DNA of 62,566 bases from Aplysia californica (taxonomy: Eukaryota): contig NW_004798009.1 of the NCBI RefSeq assembly GCF_000002075.1, positions 11,403 to 73,968 of the forward strand, read 5' to 3'. The notes beneath the pieces are model-generated. The model was not told where the DNA came from, did not search any database, and worked only from the letters and a program-made list of their open reading frames with translations. The number at the start of each line of letters is the position of its first letter. Position 1 is the stretch's first letter. The translations under genes and the position numbers were made by a program. Of the stretch, positions 1,036 to 57,206 are shown piece by piece.

Positions 1036-2286
1036 AGACATGTTTACTAATACACATATATGTACCCCCCACCCTCACACACACATAAACACACACGTTA
1101 ATCCCTCACCACCACCCTCCTCCCGTGAGCAGAAAGCACAGCCTAAAAAATCAACAAGAATTTTTTTTAAACATCAAACCAAAAATCTAAGGATTTGGAT
1201 TCCTGGAACGAAGACTGGCGTCGGGTGGGAAGTAATTAGAAATAATGATTATGACCATGAATATAATCATTAATCACCCCCCCAATCGAAACTTTCACAA
1301 TGTTCATCCATTTATACAAAAACCTGCTCCAAAATTCAAAACCTCAACACCATCAGAGATGAATTTGTAGGAGTGAAAATCACTGAGTGGCCGCAATATG
1401 TGAATATGACACCACGCAATTCAAGCGGCAGAGAGTCGATTAATTCCTTGCTCAAACTCTAATCACCTCCAAACTGACTGTAACCACCTCCTAAGTCTCC
1501 TGATCCGATCTGACCCTTGCAAAAGGACCATCTGTTACAACTTACACAGTGCAGACTATTCTAGATAATTAATATGAATGAGTAGCTGAGACTCTAGAGG
1601 AGGTCTAGTTGACTTGGAAAATCATGAATAGTTATTGGAATCTCCAAACTAACAAGACAAATTTTGTAATATAAACTCAATAATAAACTAGGCAACCCCT
1701 CCTCCAGAAACTTTTTGTGGAGCCGGAATCTTTAGTGTGTCTATTCAAGAAGGGTTATCTGCGCGACACATGAGTGCGCATTTTTCTCAAGCAGTGTATG
1801 GGGCTTTAAAAAAATAATTTTAAAAAAATTACGGATTTTTATATTTCCCAAGTGGTTCTCAAAAATTTATTAGTATGACTAGAAGATAACAGCATGTTAA
1901 CAAAGCAATGGCAACATTTCATCATGAGCAGATCAAGACAACAGTAACACTTCTGAAAAGAAGTAGGAGGAGCAGACTACACCACATTGTCCACCACAAC
2001 CAGGGTGATTCTAAGAAAAGGACATAGAAGAGGAACAGAGAGAGAAAGAGGGAGAGGAAGAGAGAGAGATGGAGAGAAAGAGAGAAGAAACACAGACAGA
2101 TAGACAGCCAGNNNNNNNNNNNNNNNNNNNNNNNNNNNNNNNNNNNNNNNNNNNNNNNNNNNNNNNNNNNNNNNNNNNNNNNNNNNNNNNNNNNNNNNNN
2201 NNNNNNNNNNNNNNNNNNNNNNNNNNNNNNNNNNNNNNNNNNNNNNNNNNNNNNNNNNNNTAAAAGATGAAATACTTTGTACTCAC

Positions 2287-5200
2287 TGAATAGCAGAGTG
2301 TGAAACACAATCTTTCCAATGATTAGTCCAACTAGCGTGCCGGTGATCCACAGCAGAACTTTGAGCAGACTCCATGCATTGGGTAACCACTTCATACACA
2401 CAAAAGAAAAGTCGTTTCCAATAACAGGGATGTTGCACTCCTGCCTACTGTGGGCTACTGGATCCTCAGCATAGATAAGAAAGTTGCAAAATGTCACAAA
2501 GTACGCAGTGAAAATCCGAAAATATGGGTGCTGAAAATGATAACGAAAATCCTTCTCCATGAACAAAGAATAGACACTGCCAGCATCTACGTCATCTTTT
2601 GTGGCAATCTCAGAACTGTCTGTTCTTCCTGCCCCATTGGAGATGTAAAAAGGCACAGGTTTCGGTCTTGTCTCCCCTCCGCTTTCTGCTCTATCTCCTC
2701 CCCCTTCATCCTGAGGTTTGTTACGGTCTGGCTTCCCATTTTTCCCATTGCGACTCACAAAAGCTTCCACGGCACTCTCAAAGGCAGGGGTAACATTCTT
2801 CCTGCCACCGCTCTCTAATTTGTCGAAGGCATCCCCATCTTCGTTTGAAGCTGCAGCTGCCGTCTCAACATCTCCATCATCGTCTCGGAGGTTGATATCC
2901 TCCATACGTGTGTCATCCTCCATGCTTTCTCCTCTGCCTTTCCTCACTCGTTGCACAGAGATTTTCAGTGGCTTGTTTTCCTCTAAGCTCTGCTCGTCCG
3001 TTACTTTCTTGCGACTGAGTTTCTTCATCTCAGTCCCCCCAACACTCTGATCTGCATTGTTGTTTCTGTCACTCGTCTGAGTGACCGGCAGATCTGACTC
3101 CACAATGCAAAGTCCTTCAACTTTGGTGATCTTGGGCAATGGGGTCGCTGTCCTCCCTACAGCATAGCAGTCCTGAGAGATAAAAAATGTAATATACAGG
3201 GTCTGTGACAATTTACATATTATAAATATGATATATGGAATTGTTGCTTATCATAAATGGTATGGGTTCAGTCCCCCTTCTATCACTGTAAAGTTATCTC
3301 AATGGTATGGGTTCAGTCCCCCTTCTATCACTGTAAAGTTATCTCAAAGAGACGAGACTTTCAACGTTGACATTCATCTCCAATAGGACCATACCAAATG
3401 GTTGGAGAGCCTTGAACACTCCCCCTAACAATCAACCTTCATGAATGCCCTGATGTGAACTCCAACCAGGACAATCCATTTCATTGCCCAGCATGGAACA
3501 ATTTGACCCGAAATTCCACACGCAAAAAAAAAATCTGACTCTACAAAGCGTTATACTCTTGTGATTGACTGTTTTAATCTGGCATATCAGATTAATGGCC
3601 AGGAAAAGCAAACATGAAAATTTTTTTTTATTTTGAAAAATCTAATCAAATTGTGCCAAAATGGTAGCTTTTGCCCTTCCATGAAGGAAAACCTGGCCAC
3701 CCCTGACTATCAACGAGCAATGTGCACTATCTGAACAGCACAACTAAAATGAAGACTCATCCCCCATCTCTTTTCCTTCCACCACGTATTGCATCTTCAC
3801 CCATGACATACCAGACGAAAATACCACAACTGACATGACATACAAACACCACTAATTAACACACACAGAGCTACTCTTCACACATGTATCCTCATCTCTA
3901 TATATATATAAAATGCATAAACCTCAACCGCATAGTGCAAGTGGAAGACAACTGGAGACCTGTGGACAGCTATCCCAGGGAAAGCGCATCGAGGCAAGCC
4001 ACACTCATTTAAGCATGACGCGTCAATGCAACTCATTGTTCTTACTGCATTATATCCCTTCCTTTTACTTTTAGCCTAAAAACCCTTAGTCAACACTGCC
4101 ATTTCATGAATCTAGCAAACACCTAAAACATGCTGCAAGCACTCCCACATTGATGGTATTTTTTTGGTAGTGTATGGTCACGGGAATCTAGGTGCTTGGG
4201 CTTTGGGTTTGTTATATTTATTCAAGAAGAGTGGTATTGGGATCATCAAACATTTTTTTTCTAGCATTACCACTGATTTATAAAGCTACACTAAATACAA
4301 GTTGACATAAGTGGCCCTATCATTTATCAAAGTAGGCCACTTCCAGTCTAAATGTCTAGCAAGATATGTCAATAGAAGAAAACAAGCTGTTTTTCAAAAT
4401 TTAAGTAAAAACAGTAGCAGGATAGGCCTTCATAGCAAACCATATATTACGATCATACTATTGCTTGCTATAACTTGTAACATGTGACCCCCCCCCCCCC
4501 CCACCCCCAGCTTCATATTTATCCTTTAACTGTAGTTTTCGCGGCCCAGATTCTGCATTCCTTCTATCCAAAAACTTGACCCATACAAATCTCATCTTCC
4601 ATACAATATGAAAGCCTTAGCCTACCGAAGAAAGACAGAAAACCAGGACAGGCTGTTAAATTCAAAGAATTAGCCTATAAATTCATTATTTCCTATATTT
4701 TCTTCATTCTATCTCCTGACTAGGCCTAGTAGTAGATTCCCATTGCCCCATTAAAAAACAGACCCATAGATCTATATACAGTGGAACCTGTGTAAGACGG
4801 CCACCCATTGTCAAGGAGAAAAGGATTTTTTTTTACTCATGCACCCGTCTCACATACATGTTTTAAATATTTTTTTCAAGTAGTATTTTGCATGTTGAAC
4901 ACGAAAATGGCCTTCATTTTTTAAGCAAATCAATAATTATTGAGTCATTGATGTTTGAAAATAGAACCAGACTATGTAGGCCTACTATATTACAGTAGGA
5001 CCAATGGCGTAGTAATATTCGACTTGTCTTTAACAATATTGGGGGTTACAGGGGGGGGGGGGGCATGCCCCCCTGACCTAAAAAGAATCTGGGTCTGGGA
5101 GGTTTCAGAGGGATTATATGCCCCACTGCATTTAACCATGATTGGATCTTTTGGCAATAATTAGGATTGATATTTACTGGGGGGGGGGGGGCTTACTCCC

Positions 5201-7931
5201 CTGCATTTGCCCATTATTTTTGTTGCAATATTACGTAGATCTAACATTTTTCTTGTAAACCACTGATTTGCGGCAATTTTCATGGCCATATTTGTTTTCA
5301 GCATCCCAAAAAACATTAGCCAGGTAACCAAAAAGAGTGCTTTTGAGTGCGGGTGCATTGACAGTTAAGATTTACCGAATATAATATATATCATCTAATA
5401 TAAAATATTTTAATTAATTAATGTAATGGACCAAAGAATAGGGGCGGGCACGAGACGAGCCGAGTACTCGTTTCTCGCTAGAAACGCCCTTCTCGTCGCT
5501 GCCCGAGCACTAAACTACTGCTCAGCACCGAGACATGACATTGCTCGTTGGCTTGACATAACGAGTAACAGTAATGAGAGTAAGAGAGTGAGAGGCGAGA
5601 AATGACAACGCAGAGAGTGCCACCCATCACCGTGCCATCCTGTGTGTGAAACTGAAAGGGAGGGGAGAGGGTGGCGAGACGAGGCGAGTGGGGAGTTGAT
5701 CAGGGCCTAAGCCTAGGTCGTCTCCCTACCGTCCTTCACCGCCTGCGCCTGCACACCAGGGCAAGCCTAGTTTCTAAGTTTAGATCCGTTGGCCTTCCCA
5801 CTAAACAAGTTGCTCGTTCTGTGGGGCGGGAAGAGAAATCTCGGCCACGGCCGGCCTTCTCGCTGAACGAGCGGCTCGAACTGCGGGGCGAGAAGAGAAA
5901 TTGGTCACGAGACGAGAAACATTGCTTGAGACACGAGACGAGAAGTATTTCTCGTTCCCGGGACTGGTCCCGGCGAGAAGTAAGTCAGCTTCTCGGTCTT
6001 CTCGCTCGGGAAGGAAAAATCTAAGCACTTCCCGCCCGTCTCTACCAAAGAGTCTACATAACAAGAGGGTCTACTCCTCTCTTTGAGCCAATTAAAAAAG
6101 TGTCCTCAAAATTCGGTGGCGCCCTCTTTGCAAATGCGCACCCTTTGCAAACAGAGTTACCCTACTTTTGTTTTAAAAATCAAAGTGAAACTAACGAGTT
6201 TTTTATTAAATAAAAATTCAAATTTCGGAAGAACGCTTTTTTAAAATGGTGACGTTGACAAAAAACCTCTTCCGGAGGAAAGGGCGACTGTTTTCTTCGT
6301 TTAATTTGACTTTAGAATGAGAGGCGAGAGGTCATTAAAAAAAAAAAAAAAACTAAAACTCCGCACTGAAAACCCCCGAACAGCTGATTAACAGCAGTCG
6401 ATCTGCGCACGCAAGGAGATGCTATTCCTATTCTTCTTCTGGAGAAACGAAAGAGAGCTTCAAAACAGACTGTAGCGCCATCTGAAACCAAGAGCGGACT
6501 TCCGGCGGACACTTTTTTTAGCAGAGGGGACCATCTTGTTATGTACTATCTTGGAATAGACGGCAAATAAGAGCGTATAGAAATCTAGCCTAGTATAATT
6601 CATTAGTAGAGTCTAGATCTACATCTAGATTTACATTCTAAATTCTGTAAGATTGAAGAATACCGGACCAGCAGACTGAGTTTGCCTATGTCTCAACTTT
6701 AGGAATTCATAATTTTCCTGTTTTTAATATCTCTCAATGGAGAATCTCGGACCGGTAGATCTATTCATTAAAATTTTGTCAGGGGGGAGACCCCCCTGAA
6801 CCCCCTCCCTCCCCCCTCCTCCTCCCCAACCACCCGCCCCACCTACCCCCACATTCTCGCGAAATGATGTACGAGTGGTCCGGTATTCTTCAATCTTTCC
6901 CTAAATTCTATTATTTACTTAGTAAACTGACTGCTTGGACAGGGGTGTGACTATATCTAGATCTAGATCTAGATCTAGACAGAGTCTAGGCTAGGCTAGG
7001 GTAGCCTCTAGGGGGCTTTTTCGGTAGTTCCCACCCCGCAATTGTTATTCACGGGTTTTGGCCACAAGAGTAGAGGGGTTTCAGGAGGGCTTGCCGCCCT
7101 GATCTAATAAAAATAGGAAGGGGGGTTTCTGGGGGGCATGCCCCCCTGATTTTTACCATAATTTAATGTTTTGCAGTTGTTAGGTTTGATATCTTAGCTC
7201 ACCGCGAATCAAACGTATAGATCTAGATCTAGATGTAGGTCAGGCTCAAATAAGGGGGGTGGGAACTACCGAAAAAGCACCGAATCGAGGACTAATCTAG
7301 ATTCTAGATCTAGATCTAGATCTAGATCTAGGTGTAGATCTAGATTTTCTAGATTCTACTATTTAGTTAAAGGCTAAAGGAACCGACTCTATCTCAATAT
7401 TTTAACACAACAATTAAAGACTAGAGTCTAGATCTAGATCTAGATCTAGATCTAGATCTAGATCTAGATATATGCATTTTTTTACCAGATCTACATCTAT
7501 CTCTATATCTATACTCTAGATATAGATTCTAGATCTAGACTCTAGATATAGATCTAGATATAGATTAGATCTACGAAAAGTAATACGAAACGGATAATGA
7601 AAGTAGACTGAAATCGTCTGCTGTTTGTGAATCGTCGTGTGTATGGCATGGCAACGCGGAAAAAAAAGAGAGAAAGAGAAAAACGATATCACTTAGTTAC
7701 GCTTAGTGTAACAGGTGGCATGTAATATAATCTAAATATTTACATACAGTACTGTGGTTACTATGCCAAGGCACAGCTAGAGGCCGATGCTTTGTTATTT
7801 ACACCTACCTCCTCTTCTTCTAAAGCACTGTTGTTGTAACTTCCTGATTCCTGTCCTCCATCTTGTGCATCGTTGACGCTCGACTTCGCCGATTTGGGGC
7901 TCAGCACGATTTTATCTTCAATTTTTGTCAT
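2287..7931 (-). CDS. TMEM117: Transmembrane protein 117 homolog, 5' part (coding exons 7809-7931 and 2287-3172; remaining exons not found, probably left of the window)
   Basis: Exon 2 encodes MEKDFRYHFQHPYFRIFTAYFVTFCNFLIYAEDPVAHSRQECNIPVIGNDFSFV...LLKVLLWITGTLVGLIIGKIVFH, which I recognise as the TMEM117 N-terminal signature (KDFRYYFQHP...FNFLIFAEDPVSHS). Acceptor tctcag|GAC at 3172, donor TTCA|gtgagt at 2287. Exon 1 runs ATG 7931 to GAG|gtaggt at 7809 (41 codons, phase 0) and joins exon 2 in frame; exon 1 is less certain than exon 2. Confidence 0.88.
5432..6553. mobile_element. P-element-like MITE ('element X' copy 1), left terminus interrupted by the hAT element
   Basis: Imperfect TIR CAAAGAGTCTACATAACAAGAG / CAAGATAGTACATAACAAGAT(rc); degenerate 8-bp flanks taatggac/gaatagac; second inverted copy at 9422-11790. 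Superfamily inferred from CA..TG ends and the 8-bp flanks. Confidence 0.6.
5439..6044. mobile_element. Non-autonomous hAT-type element
   Basis: TIRs TAGGGGCGGGC / TAGAGACGGGC(rc); 8-bp TSD ccaaagaa (5431-5438) / ccaaagag (6045-6052); subterminal CGAG-rich repeats. Confidence 0.75.
6647..6900. mobile_element. Mutator-like MITE
   Basis: TIR AAGATTGAAGAATACCGGACCA at both ends; perfect 9-bp TSD ctaaattct (6638-6646, 6901-6909). Confidence 0.8.
7012..7281. mobile_element. MITE with 26-bp TIRs
   Basis: GGGGCTTTTTCGGTAGTTCCCACCCC at left, near-perfect inverse at 7256-7281; no clear TSD. Confidence 0.7.
7296..7573. repeat. Palindromic (TAGATC)n arrays with variant units
   Basis: At least six consecutive TAGATC units from 7429, plus TAGATTC, TAGAGTC, TAGACTC and TAGATA variants. 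Confidence 0.9.
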
Positions 7932-8120
7932 CTTGACGTCTCGTCAGCTTTGCCCCGCCTCCGACAGACACTGGCACTCTCTCGAGGTGAAATAAGCCAC
8001 GCCTTCATGCATAAGTAATGATTGTGAGGGTCATTTCCGGTTTCATATTTGCTGAACAGCTGGCTTTCTAATTTTGCTTTGTTTTCTGTTATTACGTGGT
8101 ATTCTTTCTGGTATCATAAA
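7932..8120. promoter_or_regulatory. TMEM117 promoter region, possibly shared with RFWD3
   Basis: Upstream of the TMEM117 ATG; contains CRE-like TGACGTC, GC-box GCCCCGCC and ETS-like ATTTCCGG in a repeat-free stretch between transposon clusters. Confidence 0.45.
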
Positions 8121-8987
8121 ATAATTTCATAATCTTTATTTTGGCAAGGAATATTATATGATGGTAAAAACAGAAAATTGAAAACTATTGTAGAGGGAAA
8201 TATATCTTTTGTTCCGTAAATCGTTTATTTTTATCTGATTTTTCCCGCTAATTCAGTGAATTGTAATTTGCCAGATTAGTATTTAGTTTCATACAAAGTA
8301 GCAAAACACTAGGCCTCCTTATAACACGTGAGAAGCGTAAAAATAAGCACCAGTTGAAAACCTCTTAGAGATTTAAGAAATTTGTTCAACATTTTATGAG
8401 TTTCACAATAGAATCCATAGATCTGTTTAATTGTAAGAAAGGAAATTATGAATGTATTTTCTTTTTCAAATTATTTAAGACATTAATTTTAGTCTCTACA
8501 TTTGACATTTATGTCTACCAAACACAAGAGAGTACCGCAGTCCGGAATATCTGGCATATTTTGCTTTTGTTCATCAATGTTCAAGTGGAAGTCTTGAGTC
8601 TTGAGGCTCATGATGGCATCAAATTCAATGACTTTTCAACGTGACAAAGTTTGAGCATGAAAGACTGAAATAAATAGTTTTATAACGAAGGGAACGGAAT
8701 AGATCTAGATTCTAGATCTAAATCTAGTAAGAAAAAACAATGAATCGTCCTAGTTAAGTAGGCCCTCCTCATTTCTCATACACTCACCTGATAGGCTACT
8801 CATTCAATTTCAACTCATTTTTTTAGTAACCGGTGGGTATACAATACATTCTTTCACTTCATTTCACGCTCTGGTTTTATGCCCTTTCTTGTTCATTTTT
8901 ATCCGCTTTACCAGAACATTGACTTCATATAGATCTATATATTCATTACAAAGGTAAATTTTTACTTTCACTCCCACACTCTGATGA

Positions 8988-9172
8988 GGGAGGACTTCGT
9001 AACGAGCGACCACCCCATCAAACACAATAAAGAAGAGGCCTAACCCTACCCCTACCCCAAACTCAAACCCTAACCCTACCCCTACCACTAACCCTACCCC
9101 TAACCCTAACCCTACCCCTAGCCCTCAGTTCTGCTCTGTCTCATAGTGGTCGCTCGTTACAGAAGTCCTCCC
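8988..9172. mobile_element. MITE with internal degenerate (TAACCC)n repeats
   Basis: TIR GGGAGGACTTC(T)GTAACGAGCGACCAC at both ends; CCTAAC/CCTACC array ~9039-9123; relatives at ~12060-12143 and 58792-59199. Confidence 0.7.
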
Positions 9173-9281
9173 ATCATATTACTATGCCTACGAGACAGAG
9201 TAGTTAGTACAGAGGGGCAAGAGTTCATTATTAATATTAGGAATTAGAAAGGCACTCCTGTACAATTGCGGTCCCGTGATA

Positions 9282-9397
9282 CGGGGTGCCCACAACGGCT
9301 GGATCGGGCCAATCGCCTGAAACTGAAAACAAACACGTTCGTTTTTTAGGCGATCGAGTCAGGCGATCGGCCGATCACATCAGTAGTGGGCACCCTG
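9282..9397. mobile_element. Tiny Tc1/mariner-type MITE
   Basis: TA|CGGGGTGCCCAC...GTGGGCACCCTG|TA; relatives at 54847-54946 and ~35070-35250. Confidence 0.7.
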
Positions 9398-9706
9398 TAT
9401 AATTAGATCTAGATCTAGCACTGTCTGCCGAAAGTCCGCTCTTTGCTTCAGATGGCGCTGCTGTGCCAAGCTGCTGTCTGTTTTGAAGCTCTCTTTCGTT
9501 TCTCCAGAAGAAGAATAGGAATAGCTCCTCCTTGCGTGCGCTGATCGACTACTGTTCATCAGCTGTTCAGGTTCGTTCAGTGCGGAGTTTTAGGGTTTTT
9601 TTAAATTTTAATGACCTCTGCCTCTCATTCTAAAGTCAAATTAAACAAAGAAAATAGTCGCCTCTACCAGGAAGAAGTTTTTCGTCAGTGTAACCATTTT
9701 AAAAAA

Positions 9707-10788
9707 GGAGTGTATACAGACCCGGTAACCGGGAATAAAGTCACAAAGTATACAGACCCGGTAGGGGAACTCTTTTGTAAGAAAGTGGTTATTCTCACCC
9801 GCCCGGAAGTTCTCGCAAGATCAACTCCTCCCCTCTTCTCTCTCTCTCCGTCTCTTTCTGAATACTGTTTATCGGTGTGGACGATCAAATTGACCAAAAC
9901 AAAGTTAAAAAATGATATTAAAACACAAAAGTAAATAAATTTGGTTGTCTACAAAGATGCTACGGCTATTTAACTTTTCGAATCAAGCCGAACTACGCGG
10001 GTCGCCATTTTGTTTTGTCCGGAAATTCTCGCGCTACTCCTCTCTCTCTTTCTCTCTCTCTCTCCACTGCCCACAGACAAAATTGTACGCTTTTAGTAGG
10101 CTACAATTGTAATGGAACGTTTGTTCACGGCACAGAATTCTACAATTTTTCTGTTATCACAGTGTAGAATTCTGTGGTTTAGGGTGAACGCAAAATTCGG
10201 TGAACGCACACCGGGTGAGAATAGCCACAAGACTCGCCTGCACTATTCTCACTCCCGGTGAGAATAGAGGTGGCCCTTTTGTAATTTCGGAAAGTTTCAG
10301 CACCCTCTTGGCTCAGGGTAGAACTAGGTTCTTCTAGACCTATGGCCTAGGTCTAGATCTAGACAGACAGATATAAATCATTGATCTAGTTTCGAGGCTA
10401 GCCTAGATCTAGATTTAAAACTAAATGAAAATTGCGGATGTCTTTTCGATGAATGATTGTTTTTCCCCTGTTTTGGAGTTGGAGGAATCACAATTTGAAG
10501 AAAAGAACAATCACACAATGTCATAATNNNNNNNNNNNNNNNNNNNNNNNNNNNNNNNNNNNNNNNNNNNNNNNNNNNNNNNNNNNNNNNNNNNNNNNNN
10601 NNNNNNNNNNNNNNNNNNNNNNNNNNNNNNNNNNNNNNNNNNNNNNNNNNNNNNNNNNNNNNNNNNNNNNNNNNNNNNNNNNNNNNNNNNNNNNNNNNNN
10701 AAACTTTCCGAAATCACAAAAGAGTTCCCCTACCGGGTCTGTATACTTCGTGACTTTGTTCCCGGTTACCGGGTCTGTATACACTTCG
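9707..10788. mobile_element. Mutator-like element with long TIRs (contains an assembly gap)
   Basis: TIR >70 bp (AGTGTATACAGACCCGGTAACCGGGAA...); 9-10-bp TSD ttttaaaaa(a); the empty site is visible in the paralog at ~6232-6250. Confidence 0.85.
9781..10275. mobile_element. Mutator-like MITE (family B, copy 1) inserted in the left TIR of the previous element
   Basis: 9-bp TSD cttttgtaa (9772-9780, 10276-10284); the uninterrupted sequence is present in the host's right TIR; inverted paralog at 56474-57206. Confidence 0.85.
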
Positions 10789-12353: not shown

Positions 12354-15300
12354 TCAGAATACTTGGTAAAATGTCTGAAGCTTCTGCCAAAAACAATCTG
12401 AATGAAACACTGTGCCGTTATCCATTAAGATCTTGCGCACTGGTCCTCTCTCAAACATGAATTCTTCAACTACTTCCGTCACAAACCCTGCTGTCTCTCT
12501 CTTCAGTTTCTTCCATATTGCAAATCGCCCTGGGCTACAATCAACAATTGACAGGTATGGCACTTGATGATGGTGAGTTTATATCTATTGCCAGTCTTGT
12601 CCAGTCTGTCACGACATCTAGGTTGCCCGCCTCATGGACAACTGGTGCAGGATCGATAGACTGACATTGCTCACAAGCTTGTACGACTTTTTAAATCTCA
12701 GCATGGCTCGTTTCTGGTAGCACCTTCCGAGCCAAGTACAGAGTACAGTCTACCCCCATCTGGTGCATGTCATGCAGGTCTTTCAAATCAAGATGACCAG
12801 TAGCACACACGCATGGCTCTGGTTCTCCTTCCTCCATTCCATGCCCACCAGAGCTTAACCACTCCTTTTTCACTCGTGTCAGAATGTCTGCTTTGTTCTT
12901 TCTGGTCGGAACCAAGGTTATCGACATAACCTGACCAAACTCATTAAGGCTTTTCAATATCCCTCAGCGTCTCTTCACAATCAACTCAGCTGTCTCTTTG
13001 GTGTGCACTCTCCTACCTTCCGATAAAACAGTTTTGATCCAACCAGCCACCATTGCTGAGTCAGTGATAACTTTGATTTCAAAGATGTTCCACTTGATGG
13101 CCATGTTTACACCTTTCATCACAGCCTCCAGCTCTGCTTCGTTGATATGATATGGTCAAAATCTGAAGGTTTCCGAAGCCAGGCAGCGTCCTCTACCCCG
13201 TTGCCATTGATCTCCAGTAACACACCATATCCGATACTGCTGGCATCACCCCATATGGTTTCTTTGGTTGCTTTAGCCACGTACCATTTTCCTTTGACAG
13301 GATCCTCATTAGTCAAGCGGCTCAACATTTCCTTCAACATTTTCTCCACTTCATCTTCTGCAATCTTCTCCCAATCGGTACTATTAGTCCTTCTCTTTAT
13401 GTAGCTGCATGCTATTCTTCCGCAGATCGAGAACAACTCCCGTTTGGTGACATTAGACACTACATGGGGAATCCTTTTGGCTCTGGAAAATATGAGATCT
13501 CCTGCGGAATCAGATTTCAACTTCAAACCCAATGCAGCGCCACCATCCAATGGCTCTGGTTCTTTCGTTTTCAACCCTTAGTTGCCCAGGTGCTTCACCA
13601 GTGTAGCAGATGTTACCTTGCTCTCATCCAGCAGAATGTCATCAATGTAGGACTGCGTGCCAAAGTCTATCTTCTCATCCGTACTCAATACCGTTTTCAA
13701 GGTCTTCTTCATGATGCGGTGTGCCGATGTAAGACCGAATCCAAGTCTTGTCAGGCAATATGTTTTACCTTTGTAATTCACAAGTTGATATTTTCATAGA
13801 TCTCGTGACACCCAAATTTGAAGGTAAGCACCTTTCAGGTTGACAATCATTGCTGCATCTGTCGCCTGTCTCCACTCTCGCAATGTCTCGCTGCATACAT
13901 CCGTGAATTCACTCACCCCCCGTGTGACTACTTACATATTTATGGAGCTCTCTGTAGTCAAGGACAGGGTTTACCTTGTTCTTACTTGGTTGAACAACAG
14001 CCATAAGCGGAATTATGCCTATTTCTACTTTCTCATTCCATCGTAAAAGTATCCCTTCCTCTATCCAAATTTGTATCTCTTTCTCAAACCCTTCCGTAGT
14101 CTCCATATCCATCTGTTTACCATAACATCTGATCTTATTCTTTAACTGGGGAGGATCCCTTTTCCATTACCACTCTACTGTCCATGTATTGCCATCAAAA
14201 ACTGCCTTAAAATCACTGTCGTCAATAACTTCAACCTCACTGTGTTCGTAAACAGCGCTCTCTGCTCGCTTTACATTCCTCCCTGCCTGGTCTGGGGGAT
14301 CAGATTCAGTTTCCATTTCCGCTACCCCACACCATTTGACACCAAACTCAACTGTACCACAGTTGACTGAAACTCCTCCCAGGCTAGTTATAGCATCCAT
14401 TCCCTGCACCACATCAATATCAGACAGAATAGAATCTGAGACAATTGCATTTACGGAGACCGAGACACCTCGCACGTCAATGATTAGCTCTTTCTTCCCC
14501 TGACACTTCACTCGTGAATGATCAAAAGCTACCACATAGTTCTGGCCCACTCTGTTTCCAACTGCCTGTGAACTGACCACTGTGACCATACAACCTGTAT
14601 CTACCTATGCTTTGACCTTACCTCCCTTCACGCCAAGACAGGCACCGTTTCCCCTCTGACTGCATCGACTGGCTGTGTGCCCAACTTCCTTTCAGTGTTA
14701 CCAAACAATGTCAGCACGATGACTACAAAACTTACCCATATGTGGTCCACCACATCGATAACAAGAGCCTTTAAATGCCCTCACACGTTGACTGTGGCTT
14801 CCCACTTTGTTTGCCATCGCTCAGCCTACCGCCGCAACACGGACCATTCCTGTCTTGCTTGCTGTAAGGATTCTAGCTCTTGTTATTACCTCTGACAGTT
14901 CAACTTCGAAGACCCGGCTTATCTGTTGGAGCTCACACGATATCAGGTCAGGGAATCCATTTACAAAGGATAACCTAACCAGCCTATCCAGTTCGCTGCC
15001 TGAAAATCCAGCCAACCCTCCCAGTCTCTTTAGTTCGTTCGCGAAGATATCAACATGCTCACCGTCCCACCTCCTCTGTGTCAACTTACGCAACAAATGA
15101 GCTGTCTGTGAATGCCTCTAGAAGACGCTTCTCAATTGTCTGATATTGTGATCTTTCGAGCTCACTAAGCTGTAAGTACAACGCCAATGCATTACCCTCC
15201 AAGATCAGCAGTACAAATTTCGCAAGATCCTGAATGTTCTTCAAACCCACGCCGAGTTTAACCTTAGCCAACCATGCCACAACATCACTATTGCCACTGA

Positions 15301-37300: not shown

Positions 37301-40300
37301 TACACACAACATGCCACTCACCAAAGAGTCTATATTGACCACCGCCACCTTGTCATCCACTGTGACTGTGACACGGTCTCGCTGCACCAGCTTGCTGGTA
37401 CTCTCTGACCCAAACATCTCAGCCAGCATTTCCAGCAGACATTCTTGGAAGTGGGCACGGTCGATCTTCATGGGAGGGGGGATGTCTGTGGGAACAAGAG
37501 AAAGATCAGAAAAACGCTAATGAAATAATAGCATAAGCAGCAGCAGCAGCAGCAACAGCAGCGCAATACATCAAATTTTCCCATTTACTCCCCCTATTAC
37601 GAAATGTCTGGATGACTATTGTAAAGTTCGGTCTTTAAGCCGGCGACATTTTTTTCCTCAGCTTTAAACCCAGCGGCTTAATTTGTCGATTTTCCCAATT
37701 GCAGTACCGTCACGGCCTCATCTATTCTTAGCTCTAGGGTTAACTAGTGTTTATGTTCATACTCCATGTTAAAGAGTTGGCCGCAAAGTGTTAACTGTTC
37801 ACATTGTTAAGCTAGGGACACGGTGACACAGACAGGGTCAGTCAGTTGCTGTCACAGCAGCACATCAAAAAGTGTGCACGCCAAAACCGCTCATGATTTC
37901 TATTAAAACACACCAACCCCGCTATGTTGAACACGGACAGGCACAGACAGCAACAGCCAGCAACAGCCAGCGACAGTCAGGAAAATTCGAAAAGTGCGTG
38001 CACTACTTCTCCTGTCTGTCTGTTTCAAGGGAGTTAAATAAAGATACGATCACAGTGATTGTTCTTGTCAAGATGGAGGATTTTGAAGAGAAACTGATCA
38101 TTGCGGTGCAAGAAAGGCCAGCAATTTATGACAAGAGCGAAAAACATCACGCTAATCGTGATTATATATTGAAGCAGTGGGATACCATTGGCCATGAATT
38201 GGGATCGGATGGTAAGTGTTAAAAAAATAATAGATTCATGATCAATTTTATGCAGATTCTAGATATATCATCACCAACATCAATACCATCATCATCATCC
38301 TCATGAACACAATTGAACGTCTTAATTTCCTTCGTAACCACAATAATAATAAGAGTTTCTTCTTCTTTGTCAGCGCCATGATTGACAATGTTGCTGTCTC
38401 TTGCTGCCTGTTTGAATGTGACCACATTTCCCTGTGCCTGTCCGTCCCTGTGCGACAGCAAGTCTGTCTGTGTCACCGCGTTTGTACCCTTACAGTGCTA
38501 ACTGCTCACATTCAAATCAAGGCAAGGCTCAATCTGTTCAACTCTAACGCCAAAAAAGAAGATTTCAGCCGACAGGACAATGATGACACAGAATAAATGT
38601 GACGTACATATCTGTGTTGTTTAATCTGCTGTGGCTTATAAACCAGCATATCTCATTTGTGTAAAAAAAGTTTAGATTTTTTTTTTTTTTAATTTAGTTG
38701 GAGCGGCTTATAGACAGGTGCCGTCATAAGATCCAACTTCACAGTAAATATGGTGGGTCATGCATTTCCCTCAACATCCTAAGAACAAGCTATCTTGTGG
38801 CTAGCGAATCGGTAGCCCCTCCCCCTCCCCGGCATCAGCTAGATTGTACCTTTACCTTCAGGTCATACGTCAGAGAAAGGGGAAGAAGAAAAATAGGAAC
38901 AGCTAGGTAATTATGAAGATATTTTATGCATGCGTGCTGATATTTCACTCATGGCACATAAAGAATTAATTTTCTCACTTTTGACTGGGATGGGGTCACG
39001 TTCTGCCTTCAACAGGACAGCAATGACGGCATCAGCATACATGTCCGTCACAGGATTGGCTGTCCACTCGACATATGCCACACCAGAGTCCAGCGTGACC
39101 TTGACGGAGGCAAAGGCTTGGATAACGGTGTGGGGAGAGCTGGAGACAAACTCTATGTCGCCCGCCAGCTGGTTGAGGTAGTAGGTGAGCAGCGCAGGAC
39201 CCCCAGAGAACGACACGCTCATGCGCTGGGCCACCGTGCTCATCGCCAGGTCTGTGTAGCCTGGAAAACGAGGAACATCGATAAGTCAAGTCAGGACAAG
39301 ACAAGGCAAGACAAGGCAAGACAGGACAAGACAAGACAAGGCAAGGCAAGACAAGGCAAGGCAAGGCAAGGCAAGACAAGACAGGACAAGACAAGACAAG
39401 GCAGACAAGGCAAGGCAAGACAAGACAAGACAAGTCAGGACAAGACAAGACAAGGCAAGGCAAGACAAGACAAGGCAGACAAGGCAAGACAAGACAAGAC
39501 AAGGCAAGGCAAGGCAAGACAAGGCAAGACAAGGCAGACAAGACAAGGCANNNNNNNNNNNNNNNNNNNNNNNNNNNNNNNNNNNNNNNNNNNNNNNNNN
39601 NNNNNNNNNNNNNNNNNNNNNNNNNNNNNNNNNNNNNNNNNNNNNNNNNNNNNNNNNNNNNNNNNNNNNNNNNNNNNNNNNNNNNNNNNNNNNNNNNNNN
39701 NNNNNNGGCAAGACAAAACAAGTTATACAATCGAAATTGTCCAAGACAGCCACTCATTGTCGAGGAGAAAAATAGTCGACTCGGACAGGTGGACATCTTA
39801 CCGTGCCACTATAATGTAAAGAATACACAAGGGAAGAAAAAGGAAGTGGCCGTTTGTACAGGTGATTGTCTTATTCATGTGGCCGTTAAAGGAGGTTCCA
39901 CTGTACTTTAAAGATCCGTCACTGGAAGAAACTGACTGAGTATAAGTTAAGTTGGATCCTTCCCCCATGTCTTTGAGCATCGTGAAAGTCACATCATGTA
40001 TGCATATATATGTTGTGTTGTGTACCCATGTGTTGTGTCATGTAAGCATGTGTTGTGTCATGTACATTCATGTTGTGTTATGTTAGTATGTGTTGTGTCA
40101 TGAACAGTAATGTTGTGTCATGTACAGTAGTGTTGTGTCATGAACAGTAGTGTTGTGTCATGTACAGTAGTGTTGTGTCATGAACAGTAGTGTTGTGTCA
40201 TGAACAGTAGTGTTGTGTCATGTACAGTAGTGTTGTGTCATGTACAGTAGTGTTGTGTCATGTACAGTTATGTTGTGTCATGTAAGTATGTGTTGTGTCA

Positions 40301-43300
40301 TGTACAGTAGTGTTGTGTCATGTACAGTAGTGTTGTGCCATGCACAGTTGTGTCACGTAAACATGTGTTGTCTTTTGTACAGTCGTGCTGTGTCATGTAA
40401 GCATGTGTTGTCTATGTACAATCATGTTGTGTCATGAAGTATTTTGCACTAAAATAGTCATAACACTGATACCACAATCTAGAATATTTTAGGATTAAGA
40501 AATGCAAAACCATCTTGCTACATTGATTGTAATTTGATTTGGGGGGGGAGGGGGGGGGGAAGACACACCTGCATCTGTGATAGGCAGTTATGGGTTTTGC
40601 TGTTCTTCAATACAGAAGACAAGAGTTCAATTCCTGTGTGGGGACAATTTCTATTGAGTATCTTGGTCTTTCTGCTGAGACATTGTATCCCTCTAAGACC
40701 AGGTTGGCATAAATGGTTTATATTATGCCGACTGGGGTGTAGAACACCTACATTTTTTTTAAAAACATTTTAAAAACCCAAACAAATATGCAGACTGGGG
40801 CGTAAAACACCTATATATTTTTTAAAAACATTTTAAAAACCCCAACAACATTTCCAAAGTCATTAGGGAATTGGAGAACTCACTTTGCAGATCTTTGGGT
40901 GCAACAATGTGATAGTTGAAGTTTCTCTTCACCAGAATCCCAGACACCTTGTGACCTTGGGTGGGCGGTTCCGAGGCCAAGTCTCCGACAACCTGAAAGT
41001 TTCATTTTCACAAGAGTTTTACAGCACTTTAAACACATAATATATACGTCATATAACTGCCGAAGATTAGAGGTGTTACAGGAGAGTAACAAACACCAAA
41101 ATAGAAGGAGGAGAGATAAGGACAATAGATGTTTGAAGGGAAAGAAGGAGCAAACCGCATGCCTGGGTTAGCCCTGACAGGCAGCAATACAGCCCGCCTC
41201 CTAAATGATCTAAATTGTGTTGATGGAGGTGTAAAACACCTGCACTTAAACTTAGAACCACATAAAAAAATAAACAGTCCTTTAGTGCAAAGTTAGACAG
41301 ACAGAGACAACAGTGGAAAGAAAAGAAGTAGGACCTATCACTTCCACTTTCCAACCACCCCCTCTGTGGGATGAAAATTTGAAGTTGTTGAGACAAAACC
41401 ATAAGATCATGTAGTTGTAACTGTAGGTGTGTTACATAATTTAGATCATTTAGGAGATGCACCCTTAACTCTCGTCCTACGGGAGCCGGGTTTATGTCGC
41501 CCGATAAGCCTATTTCGGCACCTCGCCTACGTTCTGGTCCCAAATCAGTGTAGCCCCCGGCTCAGCGCACGCGCAGCGCGCATCCTCTTACATGTCATTC
41601 GGGTCCCGAGTCGGATCCCCATTCACGCAGGTCAAGTGTGTGTGTGCGTCAGTCTGCTTGAGTTTGTGTGCGTTTGTGGCCTTCTTCTAGAATTGCCTGC
41701 GTTGGTTCGTAATCGAGGCATACGTCTCATTCAAAACATACCAAGTTGGTAGCTCTAGATGTTCGTCTAATGAAATTATAGAAGAAATTGACCCACTTAG
41801 ACATGAGGAGCTCGAAAGGGTAGTCAGGAAACAAGACTTCCATTTTTCTATACAAAATCTTTCAAATGAGCTTGATTTTGTATGAAATGAACTACCTGAT
41901 AAAAAATAAGCTTGTTTAATAGTTTTGAATACCGTTGTGCAGGTACAAAGAACAATTTGAGTGTAAAACATTCGGAAATTGACCTATATTATCCCCTTTC
42001 GAACCTCAGGTCATTCATAACAACAAGAGCGCCTAGAAAGGTTATTCGAACGGGCTTGACTACTCGTAATGTCTTATCAGCTCGTGAGAGGGGGTTATTC
42101 ATGGGCTTGTAACACTTTATAAATAAAAAGCTATGAAAGATAGAGCGTTATTTTCATCATCGGTTAACACACTCCCACGGTATTCATGGCGAAAACACAC
42201 GTTTCCCGGCGCGCTCGCTGTTCACCAACAGTACACACTGAGTGACCCTGGCGGCCTGCCCGGCGCGTCCGACGTAATCGGTTGCTGATAAGATTCGCAT
42301 CTCGGCACAGACGCAGGACAAGAGTCAAGATCATTTACATGCTTCTCTTCACTTAAACAAAATCTTTCTCTCTCCCACTCCTCCAGTAGTATTTACCATT
42401 CCTCAGCCAACTTCTCTTTGTGCAGATCAATAAAATCCTATCTCTATGTTTTGACCCGAACAATTTCCCATCACAAACACAAGTGCATGGACCCACCTTC
42501 GCCATCTTCTCTCCACGGAAATGCAGCTCTATGGGGACGGTGTTGCGAGGGTTGTGGACCTCCATCTTGTATTCGGTGTCGTCCTCGTACTCCCGCATCA
42601 GAGCAGACTTGAGCCGAGCCATCTCGTTGACCTCACCATGTACCAACACCTGGACAACACAGACAAAGTAGAGGGAACAAAATATATATTATCAACTGGA
42701 TCTTAAATGCACTTAGTGCTAAATATTGAACATTTAAAAAAAATAAATTGCAGTTTCTTAATCTATGTTATTGGCTGTATGTGCTTGAGAAACATTTTGT
42801 TGAAATTCAAATTCTAAATGTTGAAAAAAGGACAAAAAATACACAGTATAGATACATTTGCTAAAAGAAAGAGACAGTTTTTTCTCCCTCTTGTAAAATT
42901 TCACTTTCTGGGCTTAGTACATTTTAGCAGCTTTCCGACGCGAAATTACTTTTTAAATCGCTCTTTGTTGGGGCACCCCATAGTGGCAACCAGCAATGGC
43001 GTAAGTGCAAGACTTCCAAAAGCAGTTTGCCACAAACATACAAGAAGGGGAGGGAGAAAGTGGGAGGAGGGGATGTAGCCAACTTGGCATTCTAAGAGAA
43101 CATTTTCTTGAAGAACAAAAATATTTATTAAGGTGGCCTTCTAATGCTGAGACAGGTATACTGCAAGCAAATTTTACCAAAAGTGTAGAAGAGAATTGAA
43201 AAGAAAAAAAATATTTGCATAATTTGAGAGTTTTAGACCAGGTGTGGTCAGTGCAAAATTGGCAGTATTGTTTTTTAAAAAAGGAAGTCATAGGGGAAAC

Positions 43301-52900: not shown

Positions 52901-55728
52901 TGGGGCATGAATGTCGTGAATGGCCTGAAGGAGCAACACATGCTGAAACCCAGACTCTAACTGAAGAGAACTGCAGAGAGGATGAAACCATTATCTTCAC
53001 TGATGGCTCTGTTCAGCGTGGGAACAAATCAGGCGGGCTTACACGGCTTCTACTTCTTGCCAAGGAGTAACAGTCCAGGAGGCATCTGGGGCAACGGGCC
53101 TCACTACATCAAACATGTGCATTGAGATCAATGCCATCACTGAGGCTCTGAAATGGCTTTGCACTGATGGATACCAGCAGGCTACCTTTGTTACAGACTC
53201 AATGAGTACTCGGGGTAAGATCTTGACCGGCAGCCTCTATATATATGCAGATTGGTTTAAGACAATCCAAGACAGCAAAATCAGACTTGCAGTGGATCTT
53301 CTGCCCAGGACATGCAGGAGTCAAGGGAAATGAAAGAGCAGATAAGCTAGCAGGCTCCGCAAACATAGAGGGAGTGCTTACCCTTGACCCTCCAACTGTA
53401 GTAGCTCTCTTGTCCGAGAAAACCTAGCCAGCAGCCGTGACGAGGACTCCTTCACGAAGGAGGTTGTGATTGCGAAAGGAGTGCAGTTTGGTGAAGGTAG
53501 GAAGAGCAGGCTGTGTGACCCCATCAGACGCTACAACAACCAGCTCATGGTGGAGACAATCAGCCTGCCCACACTGAAATGGACCCTCATGAAGAGGGGC
53601 AAGGAAGCATGGAGCATCCTGTCTTCCTAAGACCCCAGTTCTAGATTCAAGTACAGTAGTCTCCGCCTAAGATCCCGGTGCTCGGGAGCAAGGAAATGTG
53701 GGATCTTAGGCGAACTGGGATCATAACTGATGAACCCAGGGAAGAATCTATGGTGACCCATGTTAAGGCTCACAATCGGTAAAATGGTCTCCCTCCTCTC
53801 TACAATGAACTGACGTGCTCCCTTGGTGGGTTTATGGCATATGACGAGCAAAGAGTGGTTAAACTTGATGACCTATCACGCTGCATAGTGGCATGAGGCG
53901 TGCCATTTTCACTTATAATCCTATCATGAGTCTCAAGATCTACGCTTATCCAGTTGCCCCTCCTCTTTACCTGTCAAAAATTTATAGCTTTCCATCTCTG
54001 ACCGAGTCCCCCCCCCCACCCTCCAAATCGCCTTTGTCGTTACACACCATTACGTTGTGAACCCACCAATTAAAATTCAGTCTGTCTCGCAAATTTGGGA
54101 GTACAGACAACTGCTGCAATGGTCAAGTTCACAGTTCGATGTGATCCTGCCTGGAGCGAACATGTAGGCCCTACCCACCCAGCGAGTGATGCAAGTTTAG
54201 GTGGCGAGCTCAGATGTGAGTGCGATGCGTGGGGAAAACAAACGCATCGGTCAGTTCACACCCCGGTGTGATCCCGTCTGGGGGCAAACATTGTATCACT
54301 TCATCGAGTTTTACAACGTGTATGTGATCACATTCACGATAGTGGTTGATCTTTGACGCGACGGACAGTTTATTGATCTCAACTTATCACTCTAGGTTGA
54401 TCGGCTGTGCCCTCCCGGGTTTTTGTTTAGCAAATTATGATCTGAAATGCGGGATCTTAGCCGAATGTAGACCATCAGAGCGGGATCTTAGGGGTGACTT
54501 TTGTATAGTAAAAATTCTGTTTTCCTAAAACAACGGGATCTTAAGCGAACCGGGATCGTAAGTGGTGGGATCTTAGGCGGAGACTACTGTACTATGTTCT
54601 TAGATGGAGATGATATAACAATAATCTCACCAATATCTTTTTTCCTTTGAACTCCAGAAGATGACATGATCGACCAACTTCCTGTCCCGCTCCTCTGTAG
54701 AGACATTAAAATTATAATATTTGTAAGATTGCTTGTTTGTTGAGTATGCACACATAGACACTATAACCAATAATGGTCATTTCGCAAGTCTAAAAAAGTA
54801 GGACTGACAAACAGAAACATTTTTTGTTAAAGAAGTAGATCTAATACAGGGTGCCCATTACGGCGGGTCTTGTGCCATACATAAGCGTTTGTTTTTGAGT
54901 CAGTAAGTCGGGCCGAACCGCTGATCCTATCCCAATGGGCACCCAGTATAAGATCTACTAAAGGTGCCCTCAAAAGACCCGACTGAGTATTCTTTATGAG
55001 GAAATGTAAATTTAAACTTGAACTTATTTTTTGGAAGGACTTCCTCCCATTTTCTTTTTAAATTCAAAAACACAGACAAGAATTGAGAATACCCTCATGC
55101 CATGCCATGTGTAAAAGTTTAAAGATGACTATGACATTAATCTGATCTAGATCTAGATCTAGTGTCAGAAACAAGACTGAATCAATAGTCAATACTCCAT
55201 AGTTTAATTATTATTGTGAAGTGTAAAGGGGGCTGTCAAAAGAAGTTGGGGGTGGGGGGACAGCCCTGAGTCATTGTAGGCCTATTTGTGTTGGGGTAGG
55301 CCTTTATCTAAGAGAGTAAGGCACCTTGCCGTAAGGTAAAGCGTAAGGTAAAGCGCTAAGGCCTAGCCTTTATATTATCTTTTGTCGTAAATCCTGACTG
55401 AAAGGGCATCCAATACTTAACCCGTGCGTAACGCGGGAATCTATACCAAAGTTACAAACAGATAGATAGGCTCCATTTCTACTGTCAAGACCAAGACTGA
55501 CTGTAAGTGTAATTCATTTCGAGTTAAACGCACGCAAGCGCATCAGAAAAATCTCTAGAATATAGATCTAGATCTAAATCTATATAGAATCTATAGAGAC
55601 AATACACTTGATACTATTTCTATCAGTATATGTTCAGGAAACGAAAGAACATACAAAGGTCTTATTTGAAGGATATCGCTTTCTTCAGCCGGTAACTGTG
55701 TTGTTTCTGTCTTTCGTTTCGCAGCCAT
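34326..55728 (-). CDS. CPSF3: Cleavage and polyadenylation specificity factor subunit 3 (CPSF73; metallo-beta-lactamase/beta-CASP endonuclease), 687 aa. Coding exons: 55655-55728, 54631-54694, 51408-51505, 50079-50207, 49551-49635, 48602-48694, 47800-47889, 47189-47339, 46128-46303, 44962-45120, 43500-43646, 42497-42649, 40884-40992, 38979-39260, 37322-37485, 34326-34415
   Basis: Spliced protein has [39 protein letters not shown] (HxHxDH), [71 protein letters not shown] and the CPSF73 C-terminal [15 protein letters not shown]. 16 GT-AG exons sum to 2064 nt with no internal stop. Confidence 0.97.
34848..36372. mobile_element. Composite non-autonomous TIR element with 6-bp TSD
   Basis: TIR CTGTCCTCA(G/C)AGAAA(T/G)TTGC; TSD atttgt (34842-34847, 36373-36378); subterminal GCAACTTTT repeats at both ends; contains nested MITEs. 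Confidence 0.75.
35507..36043. mobile_element. Harbinger-like MITE nested in the composite element
   Basis: TIR GGGGTCGTTTAAATATAAT / GGGGCTGTTCAAATATAAT(rc); 3-bp aaa flanks. Confidence 0.6.
37811..38489. mobile_element. Internally deleted PIF/Harbinger element with a MADF-domain exon
   Basis: TIR core CGGTGACACAGACAG at both ends; TAA/TTA flanks; 38073-38211 encodes [44 protein letters not shown] (MADF/Myb-SANT-like) ending in G|gtaagt. Confidence 0.8.
39285..39716. repeat. Pentamer satellite (ACAAG/GCAAG)n spanning an assembly gap
   Basis: Directly visible; N-run 39551-39706. Confidence 0.95.
40010..40436. repeat. 20-bp minisatellite (TGTTGTGTCATGTACAGTAG)n
   Basis: About 20 units, homogeneous in the centre and degenerate at the edges. 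Confidence 0.95.
45397..46151 (-). repeat. 30-34-bp minisatellite derived from the CPSF3 exon 9/intron junction, split by a hAT insertion
   Basis: The exon end AAGCACATCATTAACTTAAAG|gtacg is reiterated as AAGCATATCATGAACTTAGAGAGAG-gtatg-like units (x3) and AAGCATATCATTAACTTAAAG-gtatg (x1). Confidence 0.9.
45506..46081. mobile_element. Non-autonomous hAT element
   Basis: TIR TAGGGCTGG(G/A)TC; perfect 8-bp TSD ctcgtaac (45498-45505, 46082-46089). Confidence 0.9.
51928..52140 (+). mobile_element. tRNA-derived SINE
   Basis: GGTAGCCTAGTGGTTA (A box), GGTTCAAGCC (B box), TGTCCCTTGGAAAGACACTTTAC core. Confidence 0.65.
52590..53625 (+). mobile_element. Degenerate RNase H-containing LINE 3' fragment
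   Basis: Frameshifted pieces [58 protein letters not shown]. Confidence 0.85.
53654..54589. mobile_element. pogo/Tigger-type MITE
   Basis: Perfect 23-bp TIR CAGTAGTCTCCGCCTAAGATCCC with TA TSD; subterminal GGGATCTTA repeats. Confidence 0.9.
54847..54946. mobile_element. Tiny Tc1/mariner-type MITE
   Basis: TA|CAGGGTGCCCATT...AATGGGCACCCAG|TA; related to 9282-9397. Confidence 0.7.
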
Positions 55729-55957: not shown

Positions 55958-55992
55958 ATGGAGGCAGATTTTGACCATGAGGACAAGTACAG
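55958..55992 (+). CDS. Probable first exon (MEADFDHEDKY-R/S) of an unidentified gene or uORF divergent from CPSF3
   Basis: AGTATGG start context and donor CAG|gtaatt, 229 bp from the CPSF3 ATG on the opposite strand. No homology recognised. Confidence 0.4.
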
Positions 55993-56473: not shown

Positions 56474-57206
56474 GGCCACCTCTATTCTCACCCCGGGTGA
56501 GAATAGCGCAGGCGAGTCTTTTGGCTATTCTCACCCGGTGTCCGTTCACAGTTATAGCCTAGATCTAGGCTAACCAATTTGGCGTTCCCCCTAAACCACA
56601 GAATTCTACACTGTGATAACAGAAAAATTGTAGAATTCTGTGCCAGTAACAAACGTTCTATTACTACTGTTAGCCTACTAAAAGCGTACAATTTTGTCTG
56701 TGGGCAGTGGAGAGAGAGAGAGAGAGATAGAGGAGTAGCGCGAGAACTTCCGGGCAAAACAAAACGGCTTGATTCGAAAAGTTAAATAGCCGTAGCATCT
56801 TTGTAGACGACCAAATTAATTATCATTTTTTTTACTTTGTTTTGGTCAATTTGATCGTCCACACCAATAGACAGTATTCAGAAAGAGACAAGAGAGAGAG
56901 AAGAGGGGAGGAGTAGATCTTGCGAGAACTTCCAGGCAAAACAAAATGGCGGCCCCCGTAGTTCGGCTCGATTCGAAAAGTGAAATAGCCATAGCATCTT
57001 TGTAGACGATCAAATTAGCTTACTTTTGTGCTATAATATAACGTAATCTTTTCTTTGCCTTTATCCATTTGATCACCCACATCGATAGAAAGTATTCCGA
57101 AATTAGGAAAAACAGGTCTTGTTTCACACCTACGGTGGCAAGTCTCACCCGGGGTGAGAGGTCGATCGTATTTCTATTCTCACCCCGGGTGATAATAGCC
57201 ACTTCC
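56474..57206. mobile_element. Mutator-like MITE (family B, copy 2)
   Basis: Perfect 9-bp TSD ttgtcacta (56465-56473, 57207-57215); inverted paralog of 9781-10275; internal tandemly repeated module. Confidence 0.85.

Follow-up and report, generated by a model that had tools for sequence, protein, structure and literature searches.

What process fills the surroundings of a gene start with short tandem blocks of one palindrome? The question is raised by a stretch of the Aplysia californica genome (contig NW_004798009.1, positions 11,403 to 73,968), the whole 62,566 nt of which we analyzed and here call the window. In this stretch, the palindromic 6-mer TAGATC, which can equally be read as TCTAGA or AGATCT, forms many short tandem blocks, together with variant units, around the putative start of a TMEM117 gene. 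An initial annotation had taken essentially every unit to be a scar left by TA-targeting transposons in germline open chromatin. The observation is real and unusual, and we found no description of the TAGATC-array pattern in the literature searched; an Rfam search of the window likewise gave no matches. The explanation that we favor, with about an even chance of being correct, is a lineage-specific repeat that is seeded at TA, grows by slippage and perhaps by breaks at the center of the palindrome, is spread by transposons, and is concentrated in promoter-type DNA.

The excess of the unit is large and specific. In the window, TAGATCTA occurs 48 times, against 0.90 +/- 1.04 in 100 dinucleotide-preserving shuffles, and all 48 copies are confined to three zones, at 4.7 to 11.5, 32.9 to 35.5, and 54.8 to 56.6 kb. 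The stretches from 12.3 to 32.9 kb and from 36.4 to 54.8 kb, which had been judged unit poor by eye, contain none. When core specificity was examined in 217 kb (the window and the flanks of the fetched loci) against an order-2 Markov expectation, we counted 298 copies of TAGATCTA (5.2 expected), 52 of TAGGCCTA (2.2 expected), 72 of TAGAWTCTA (3.3 expected), and 81 of TAGSCTA (18.5 expected). Among palindromic cores, enrichment is limited to GATC and GGCC, as GCGC, CCGG, GTAC, AATT, TCGA, and CTAG all occur at expectation, and CAG/CTG scars are barely enriched (1.6-fold). The arrays are self-complementary. It had been claimed that every unit parses as TA, two or three letters of one or both transposon ends, and TA; this holds for 47 of 61 cores of 2 to 6 nt (77%, versus 11% in the background) and fails for the rest, and the exceptions CATC, GATT, GATG, AATC, and GGTG resemble point-mutated units.

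The seeding step is seen when repeat copies are compared. All repeat copies in 266 kb were surveyed for insertions with clean flanks, which were shifted leftmost and merged where duplicated. Among 82 distinct six-base insertions, 8 are an exact change from TA to TA-GATC-TA, against an expectation of about 0.02 for any single hexamer, and another 5 are close variants of this change; 3 of 68 five-base insertions produce TA-GGC/GCC-TA. The unit is the minority state at every gain, the copies without it numbering 13 at L043:1762, 4 at L062:2347, and 3 at L054:1832, and some of the flanks lack any part of GATC (for example, GAAG-TA-TACA at L062:2347). Single-step gain of whole units at a lone TA, as the initial annotation had foreseen, is thus borne out between repeat copies at the following sites:

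GATC gains: L043:1762, L062:2347, L054:1832, L056/L060, L045/L063, L030:2773, and window position 56559
GGC/GCC gains: L004:199, window position 29879, and L059:2795

A "24-bp palindromic insertion" at 56548 to 56572 was rejected as a gain of that size, being a segment of an older subfamily that is missing from the young subfamily; the sole gain there is the TAGATC at its center, by which CCTAGG becomes CCTAGATCTAGG and which a second copy shows too. We also rejected elements of the PHIS superfamily as the source, since their targets (A-AT-T for ISL2EU and C-TNA-G for NuwaII; PMC4482050) do not match gains at TA.

The growth of arrays has left traces of a different kind. Arrays of period 6, 13, and 39 were reported by a tandem repeat finder, among them one of period 13 with 4.1 copies at 7515 to 7566. 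At the site at 10354, repeat copies hold from one to four units, including a duplicated variant unit GGTC, and since a newly made scar would not copy such a variant, this duplication points to slippage or unequal exchange. Plain slippage does not predict the length variants that are centered on the junction of GA and TC. Among 73 five-letter cores next to a canonical unit, 49 are GA-N-TC (with A/T in 40 and C/G in 9) and 3 have the extra letter elsewhere, and the unit-length spectrum runs from GATC over GAWTC to GATATC in decreasing order, with variation confined to that center. Such center-specific variants fit a joint between GA and TC, made up either of transposon-end remnants or of two copies of the 8-bp duplication NTCTAGAN. 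A copy of the local 8-bp target as the source of the added letters fits the 6-, 7-, and 8-letter steps within arrays, not the gains at a lone TA.

Of the three zones, two coincide with gene 5' ends: the putative TMEM117 exon 1 in one, and in the other the start of CPSF3 together with that of a divergent gene. Gene pieces were searched one open reading frame (ORF) at a time, with no exons joined into a spliced model. Positions 1 to 92 of the TMEM117 Pfam profile are matched by the minus-strand ORF at 2261 to 3211 (match at about 2279 to 2551), and poly-A RNA reads at 7780 to 7917 overlap the putative exon 1; a splice from this exon to the TMEM117 domain exon would join the two. Minus-strand pieces of CPSF3 at about 50, 45, and 39 kb correspond to Lactamase_B (weak and below the Pfam cutoff), Beta-Casp, and the CPSF73 C-terminal domain. 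The ATG of the gene would be at 54667 and its terminal exon near 34.3 to 34.4 kb; this exon was read by eye, and we take it to resemble the human C terminus. The divergent gene, on the plus strand, begins at 55958. In the two promoter zones, the density of the GATC unit is 114 times that in the remainder of the window (binomial p = 8e-32), and GAWTC, GASTC, and GGC/GCC are enriched there too, the last being 6 times denser. TACAGTA/TACTGTA occurs in the promoter zones at 0.8 times its density elsewhere, so the TA-CAG-TA at 7745, at first counted as a member of the halo, does not belong to it. As only the GATC series is promoter centered in these densities, the halo is essentially a GATC-series feature.

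Around the TMEM117 start, the halo consists of arrays and of DNA transposons, several of which are MITEs (miniature inverted-repeat transposable elements):

6607 to 6621: short array with cores GAGTC and GATC, in intron 1 and adjoining a MITE; no repeat copy examined spans it
6647 to 6900: MITE with the 9-bp target duplication CTAAATTCT at 6638 to 6646 and 6901 to 6909
6958 to 7004: array of three GATC units followed by units of GGC, GGC, GGG, and GCC; the next MITE adjoins it
7011 to 7279: MITE with inverted ends, enclosing the two-unit array at 7218 to 7231
7298 to 7358: array in single-copy intron DNA, about 450 to 510 bp below the exon 1 donor
7422 to 7466: the purest array, with one GAGTC unit and then six perfect GATC units
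7523 to 7573: array with a 13-base higher-order period, a block duplication
7808 to 7931, minus strand: putative TMEM117 first coding exon, with its ATG at 7931, 41 codons, and a GT donor at about 7808
8700 to 8720: upstream array of GATC, GATTC, and GATC in single-copy DNA, the same in an independent sample
9263 to 9400: TA-flanked MITE fragment (TA followed by CAATTGCGG...) with its right end cut, followed by the two-unit array at 9404 to 9417
9422 to 9778, plus strand: repeat copy, inverted relative to the copy at 6202 to 6511 and resuming at 10276 to 10420 past a nested MITE
9779 to 10275, plus strand: young Mutator-like MITE of 495 bp with a 9-bp target duplication
10335 to 10411: units GACC, GGTC, GATC ... 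GGC, GCC, GATC, part of a repeat end, of which other copies have one to four units

Every array that had been pointed out by eye is present at its place, the last two at 10335 to 10361 and 10395 to 10411, and they do flank the putative exon 1 on both sides. The densest arrays, at 7298 to 7573 and 8700 to 8720, have single-copy read depth and are spanned by no repeat copy examined. A contig of the independent sample equals 7549 to 9025 letter for letter, and the arrays are therefore no artifact of assembly. Public runs were compared over 6400 to 10520, namely, two contig sets that are probably DNA, one run whose label names another organism, and a single raw RNA run. Pieces from runs labeled as a second organism (X12, X17, and X18) are identical to the window locus, and this label probably does not denote a diverged species.

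Several other features lie in the upstream half of the halo. An inverted-repeat element at 8975 to 9190 has at its center about 87 bp of (CCTAAC)n, a tract that is telomere-like but degenerate, and for which Rfam gave no match. On the MITE fragment, minus-strand poly-A RNA reads pile up about 95-fold at 9160 to 9435, 572 of them with the same loose end at 9275, and these are probably transcripts from other copies of the MITE family. The inverted ends that read TA followed by CAGACCCGG at 9717 and 10777 may belong together as a pair of Tc1/mariner type, or may stem from one repeat that is present in two inverted copies.

Other units travel inside transposons. Those at 6756, 7218, 10354, and 10404 are repeat borne, as other genomic copies have them; the TAGATCTA at 6756, inside the MITE at 6647 to 6900, is present in two other copies too, and the array at 7218 to 7231 recurs in another MITE copy (L044) at a different length. 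Just beyond the stretch first described, the units at 11071 and 11448 likewise lie in repeats whose other copies carry them. The third zone, near 35 kb, is not a promoter and lies in the last intron of CPSF3. It is an inherited internal portion of a 1.5-kb element with inverted ends (34861 to 36374), which has thousands of candidate copies and also holds a nested MITE-like piece. All palindromic units of this element lie in a 311-bp segment (35190 to 35500), to which at least 39 other copies of equal length align over its full extent at 84 to 92% identity. A fixed place within many element copies is thus found for the 35-kb cluster and for the six repeat-borne units just named, and not for the single-copy arrays at 7298 to 7573 and 8700. 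The claim that all clusters were written in place consequently fails, because the 35-kb cluster and part of the halo are carried by transposons.

The remaining parts of the window are of another character. In the unit-free 12 to 33 kb, minus-strand ORFs at 24541 to 25374 and 13122 to 13574 match RNase H and DUF7047, and this part therefore looks retroelement rich, intergenic, and low in CpG observed/expected. The CPSF3 introns hold an (AAGAC)n microsatellite of 53 copies (39283 to 39547), an N run, and a 20/40-base minisatellite of about 21 copies (40011 to 40436).

The setting of the arrays is consistent with an accessible compartment. Kilobase bins of the window with at least three units have a CpG observed/expected ratio of 0.74, versus 0.55 elsewhere (p = 0.0014), and in 61 other loci the ratio is 0.80 in bins with at least two units, versus 0.71 (p = 0.011); such CpG retention suggests DNA that is unmethylated in the germ line. 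Mutator-type elements, such as maize Mu, prefer gene 5' ends, and the young 495-bp MITE, with more than 5000 candidates genome-wide at 96 to 98% identity, is similarly present in both promoter zones of the window. The flanks of 29 other insertions of it contain 12 perfect three-unit arrays against 0.82 expected, 15 times the genome rate, whereas the excess in the flanks of an older repeat is only 3-fold. Since 9-bp duplications cannot yield 6-bp units, we take this MITE to mark the same compartment and not to cause the arrays. Together, the CpG and MITE results fit a shared accessible compartment, short of proof for the promoter link. The same MITE is often found inside one palindromic spot (GGGGAACTCTTTTG...) of another repeat, adjoining TAGATC arrays (in the window and in L002 to L030).

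In the genome as a whole (927 Mb in 4332 contigs), the 20-letter three-unit form was counted 7478 times, and units that are isolated or at an array edge number 52,342. On contig C1, the first megabase has 12 unit clusters of up to 12 kb, a dispersion index of 2.5, and 42% of gaps below 2 kb, versus 18% at random. These counts and this clustering make the unit zones a general feature of the genome and not of this locus alone. First and last exons of the Ras family were located genome-wide, and as an anecdote, one array on C1 is 6 kb upstream of the 5'-most Ras-family exon found there.

The explanation that we favor runs as follows. The stretch would comprise the promoter and first intron of TMEM117, in CpG-keeping DNA where DNA transposons land often. 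A single TA would become TA-GATC-TA in one step, or less often TA-GGC/GCC-TA, and whereas the gain is an observation, the simplest reading of its agent would be a cut-and-paste event in which TA is duplicated and two or three letters of each transposon end stay behind. Arrays would then gain further units, one or several at a time, through slippage during replication or through unequal exchange, as repeat copies demonstrate, and break-and-join events at the center between GA and TC may add 6, 7, or 8 letters. Units or small arrays born inside transposons would be carried to new places, as seen for the repeat-borne units, and concentration beside promoters, judged from two promoter regions and indirect marks, would reflect where breaks occur or are tolerated.

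A number of results weigh against this favored explanation. In 266 kb, we found no inverted-repeat element that is flanked by TA and has GA..TC or GG..CC ends, although the absence of a donor is weak evidence because the sample is small. The gains do not lie nearer to existing arrays than randomly chosen positions do, for which reason templated copying from nearby arrays was rejected. The promoter link is based on two regions of one window and on proxies, and TAGGCCTA, at 3.3 times the density in the promoter zones, is not significantly enriched there. The CAG/CTG series has matching TA-CAG elements inside the halos yet no promoter enrichment, and a general model in which TA transposons scar promoters fails on that account. 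Finally, no length polymorphism can be read from the public runs, whose contigs are interrupted at the arrays and in which repeat copies map across one another.

The best-surviving alternative, which we nonetheless consider unlikely, is that of an ordinary (TCTAGA)n microsatellite that expanded by slippage, decays by point mutation, and was spread by transposons without any scars, its position beside promoters being the landing preference of its carriers. The arrays do resemble hexanucleotide microsatellites in their head-to-tail perfect units, their higher-order periods such as the 13-base one, and a copy number that varies at one site between related copies, with a duplicated variant unit among the variants. 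Point-mutated units, a 35-kb cluster carried wholly by a transposon along with several units of the halo, and the array-rich flanks of the Mutator-like MITE would be expected as well. However, slippage cannot make GATC at a lone TA, and this has happened recurrently at unrelated sites. Whereas slippage builds new tracts solely from proto-repeats, units here arose at a lone TA with no GATC in the flanks. The DNA that holds the main arrays (7298 to 7573 and 8700) is single copy, and the unit, a perfect palindrome, has nearly all of its one-letter length variants at the center instead of spread over its length; there are, moreover, kilobase-scale zones of many small blocks and not one tract. As in microsatellite-bearing transposons, for example microsatellite-associated MITEs (PMC8449440), arrays travel inside transposon copies here, at 34861 to 36374 and in the repeat end at 10335 to 10411; the densest arrays of our window differ in lying in single-copy promoter and intron DNA.

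Distinctly unlikely, in our estimate, is a bolder version of the seeding step, according to which a TA-cutting, fill-in activity (a transposase of elements with G-starting ends or a domesticated nuclease) that prefers germline-open promoters would write GATC-centered palindromes, each of which would provide new TA targets, giving rise to a self-reinforcing heritable record of germline activity.

Growth might instead proceed mainly by breakage and rejoining at the center of the palindrome, either through an element with the 8-bp duplication NTCTAGAN (hAT/Buster-like, nnnTAnnn) or through cruciform cutting between GA and TC, and this we regard as improbable. Both duplicates would be kept minus 0 to 2 junction letters, so that each round would add 8, 7, or 6 letters and a further target. 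The observed order of GATC, GAWTC, and GATATC, with its variation limited to the center, is what this process predicts, and it would suit the self-complementarity of the arrays. Elements that excise via hairpinned flanks are active here, and the Mutator-like MITE landed in the zones; hAT-like steps are reported for the transposition of Mutator-like elements (PMC5499845). But no GATC is possible by this route at a lone TA without those flank letters, as at L062:2347, the 45 segments that separate array blocks include none resembling an element bounded by inverted ends, and GASTC variants are not predicted.

Quite improbable is the full model of the initial annotation, in which essentially all units are excision scars of TA-targeting transposons in germline open chromatin and the arrays record promoter activity. 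The gains at a lone TA, the excess of cores within the grammar over the background, and the promoter-type setting speak for it. The units are like Tc1/mariner footprints (TAC(A/T)GTA for Sleeping Beauty and TA-CATG-TA for Tc1) in that a duplicated TA brackets 2 to 5 symmetric extra letters and is gained at TA in one step. Scars of 2 to 4 bp are documented for this group, one member of which favors active starts and open chromatin (PMC7913693). Unlike such footprints, the retained letters GA..TC and GG..CC match no element found here, and the classic CAG/CTG scars, like those with GGCC, are not promoter centered. We know of no report that Tc1/mariner scars build tandem arrays. Block duplications and transposon-carried clusters further argue against this model, and chimeric cores such as GGTC and GACC would need two families to contribute ends at a single site. 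Excising maize Helitrons are said to leave (TA)n footprints, which are alike in being a short TA-based repeat left by excision and differ in element type and unit.

The donors postulated by that model, with GA(G/A)..(C/T)TC and GG(C)..(G)CC termini, were sought in the same 266 kb, and none that is flanked by TA was found; TA-anchored inverted-repeat scans for GA-type ends recovered the arrays themselves alone. The TA-flanked elements that are present have CAG, CAA, or CAC ends, such as those at L028:2240-2465 and at 53654 to 54589 in the window, and the inverted ends at 9717 and 10777 may make a third case. The element at 53654 to 54589, which lies some 80 bp away from the start codon of CPSF3, is a 936-bp pogo/Tigger-like element with perfect 14-bp inverted ends (CAGTAGTCTCCGCC). 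Two candidates were rejected. TA followed by GCCGTACTT, considered as a GCC..GGC donor, always follows TCTA or GCTA, which are conserved, and turned out to be a 26-bp palindrome in the interior of a larger repeat. The MITE at 54845 to 54951 could be read as TA followed by GATCTAATAC..., which would give GA..TC ends, but the junction ended by GATCT occurs just 15 times genome-wide. A 26-bp perfect palindrome, TCTAGCCGTAC-TTAA-GTACGGCTAGA, recurs inside a repeat family (L022:880-1440, L002, L007, L012, and L036) and looks like two element ends joined over TTAA.

Least probable of all is that the units are candidate binding sites for a dimeric protein recognizing TCTAGA or AGATCT, kept near promoters by selection with the TA gains incidental. 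The palindromic hexamers do cluster on either side of two promoter regions and resemble palindromic promoter motifs such as the Drosophila DRE, but the same arrays occur inside transposons in an intron far from any start, their number, spacing, and position vary freely, and the units decay by point mutation.

The reading of the units as footprints is thus right on the seeding step and on the joint-like grammar, unproven on the agent, and wrong in taking all units and all clusters for scars made in place. If the unit is no more than a palindromic microsatellite that is prone to slippage and has been spread by transposons, it would be a curiosity of this lineage, mainly relevant to annotation and to assembly, for which the arrays matter because contigs break at them. 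If, in contrast, seeding is a transposon scar or another site-specific break, a mutational process would be creating a new class of repeats that is concentrated at gene starts. Such a process would offer a documented route for the birth of microsatellites and a marker, from sequence only, of germline-accessible promoters in an animal with little chromatin data.

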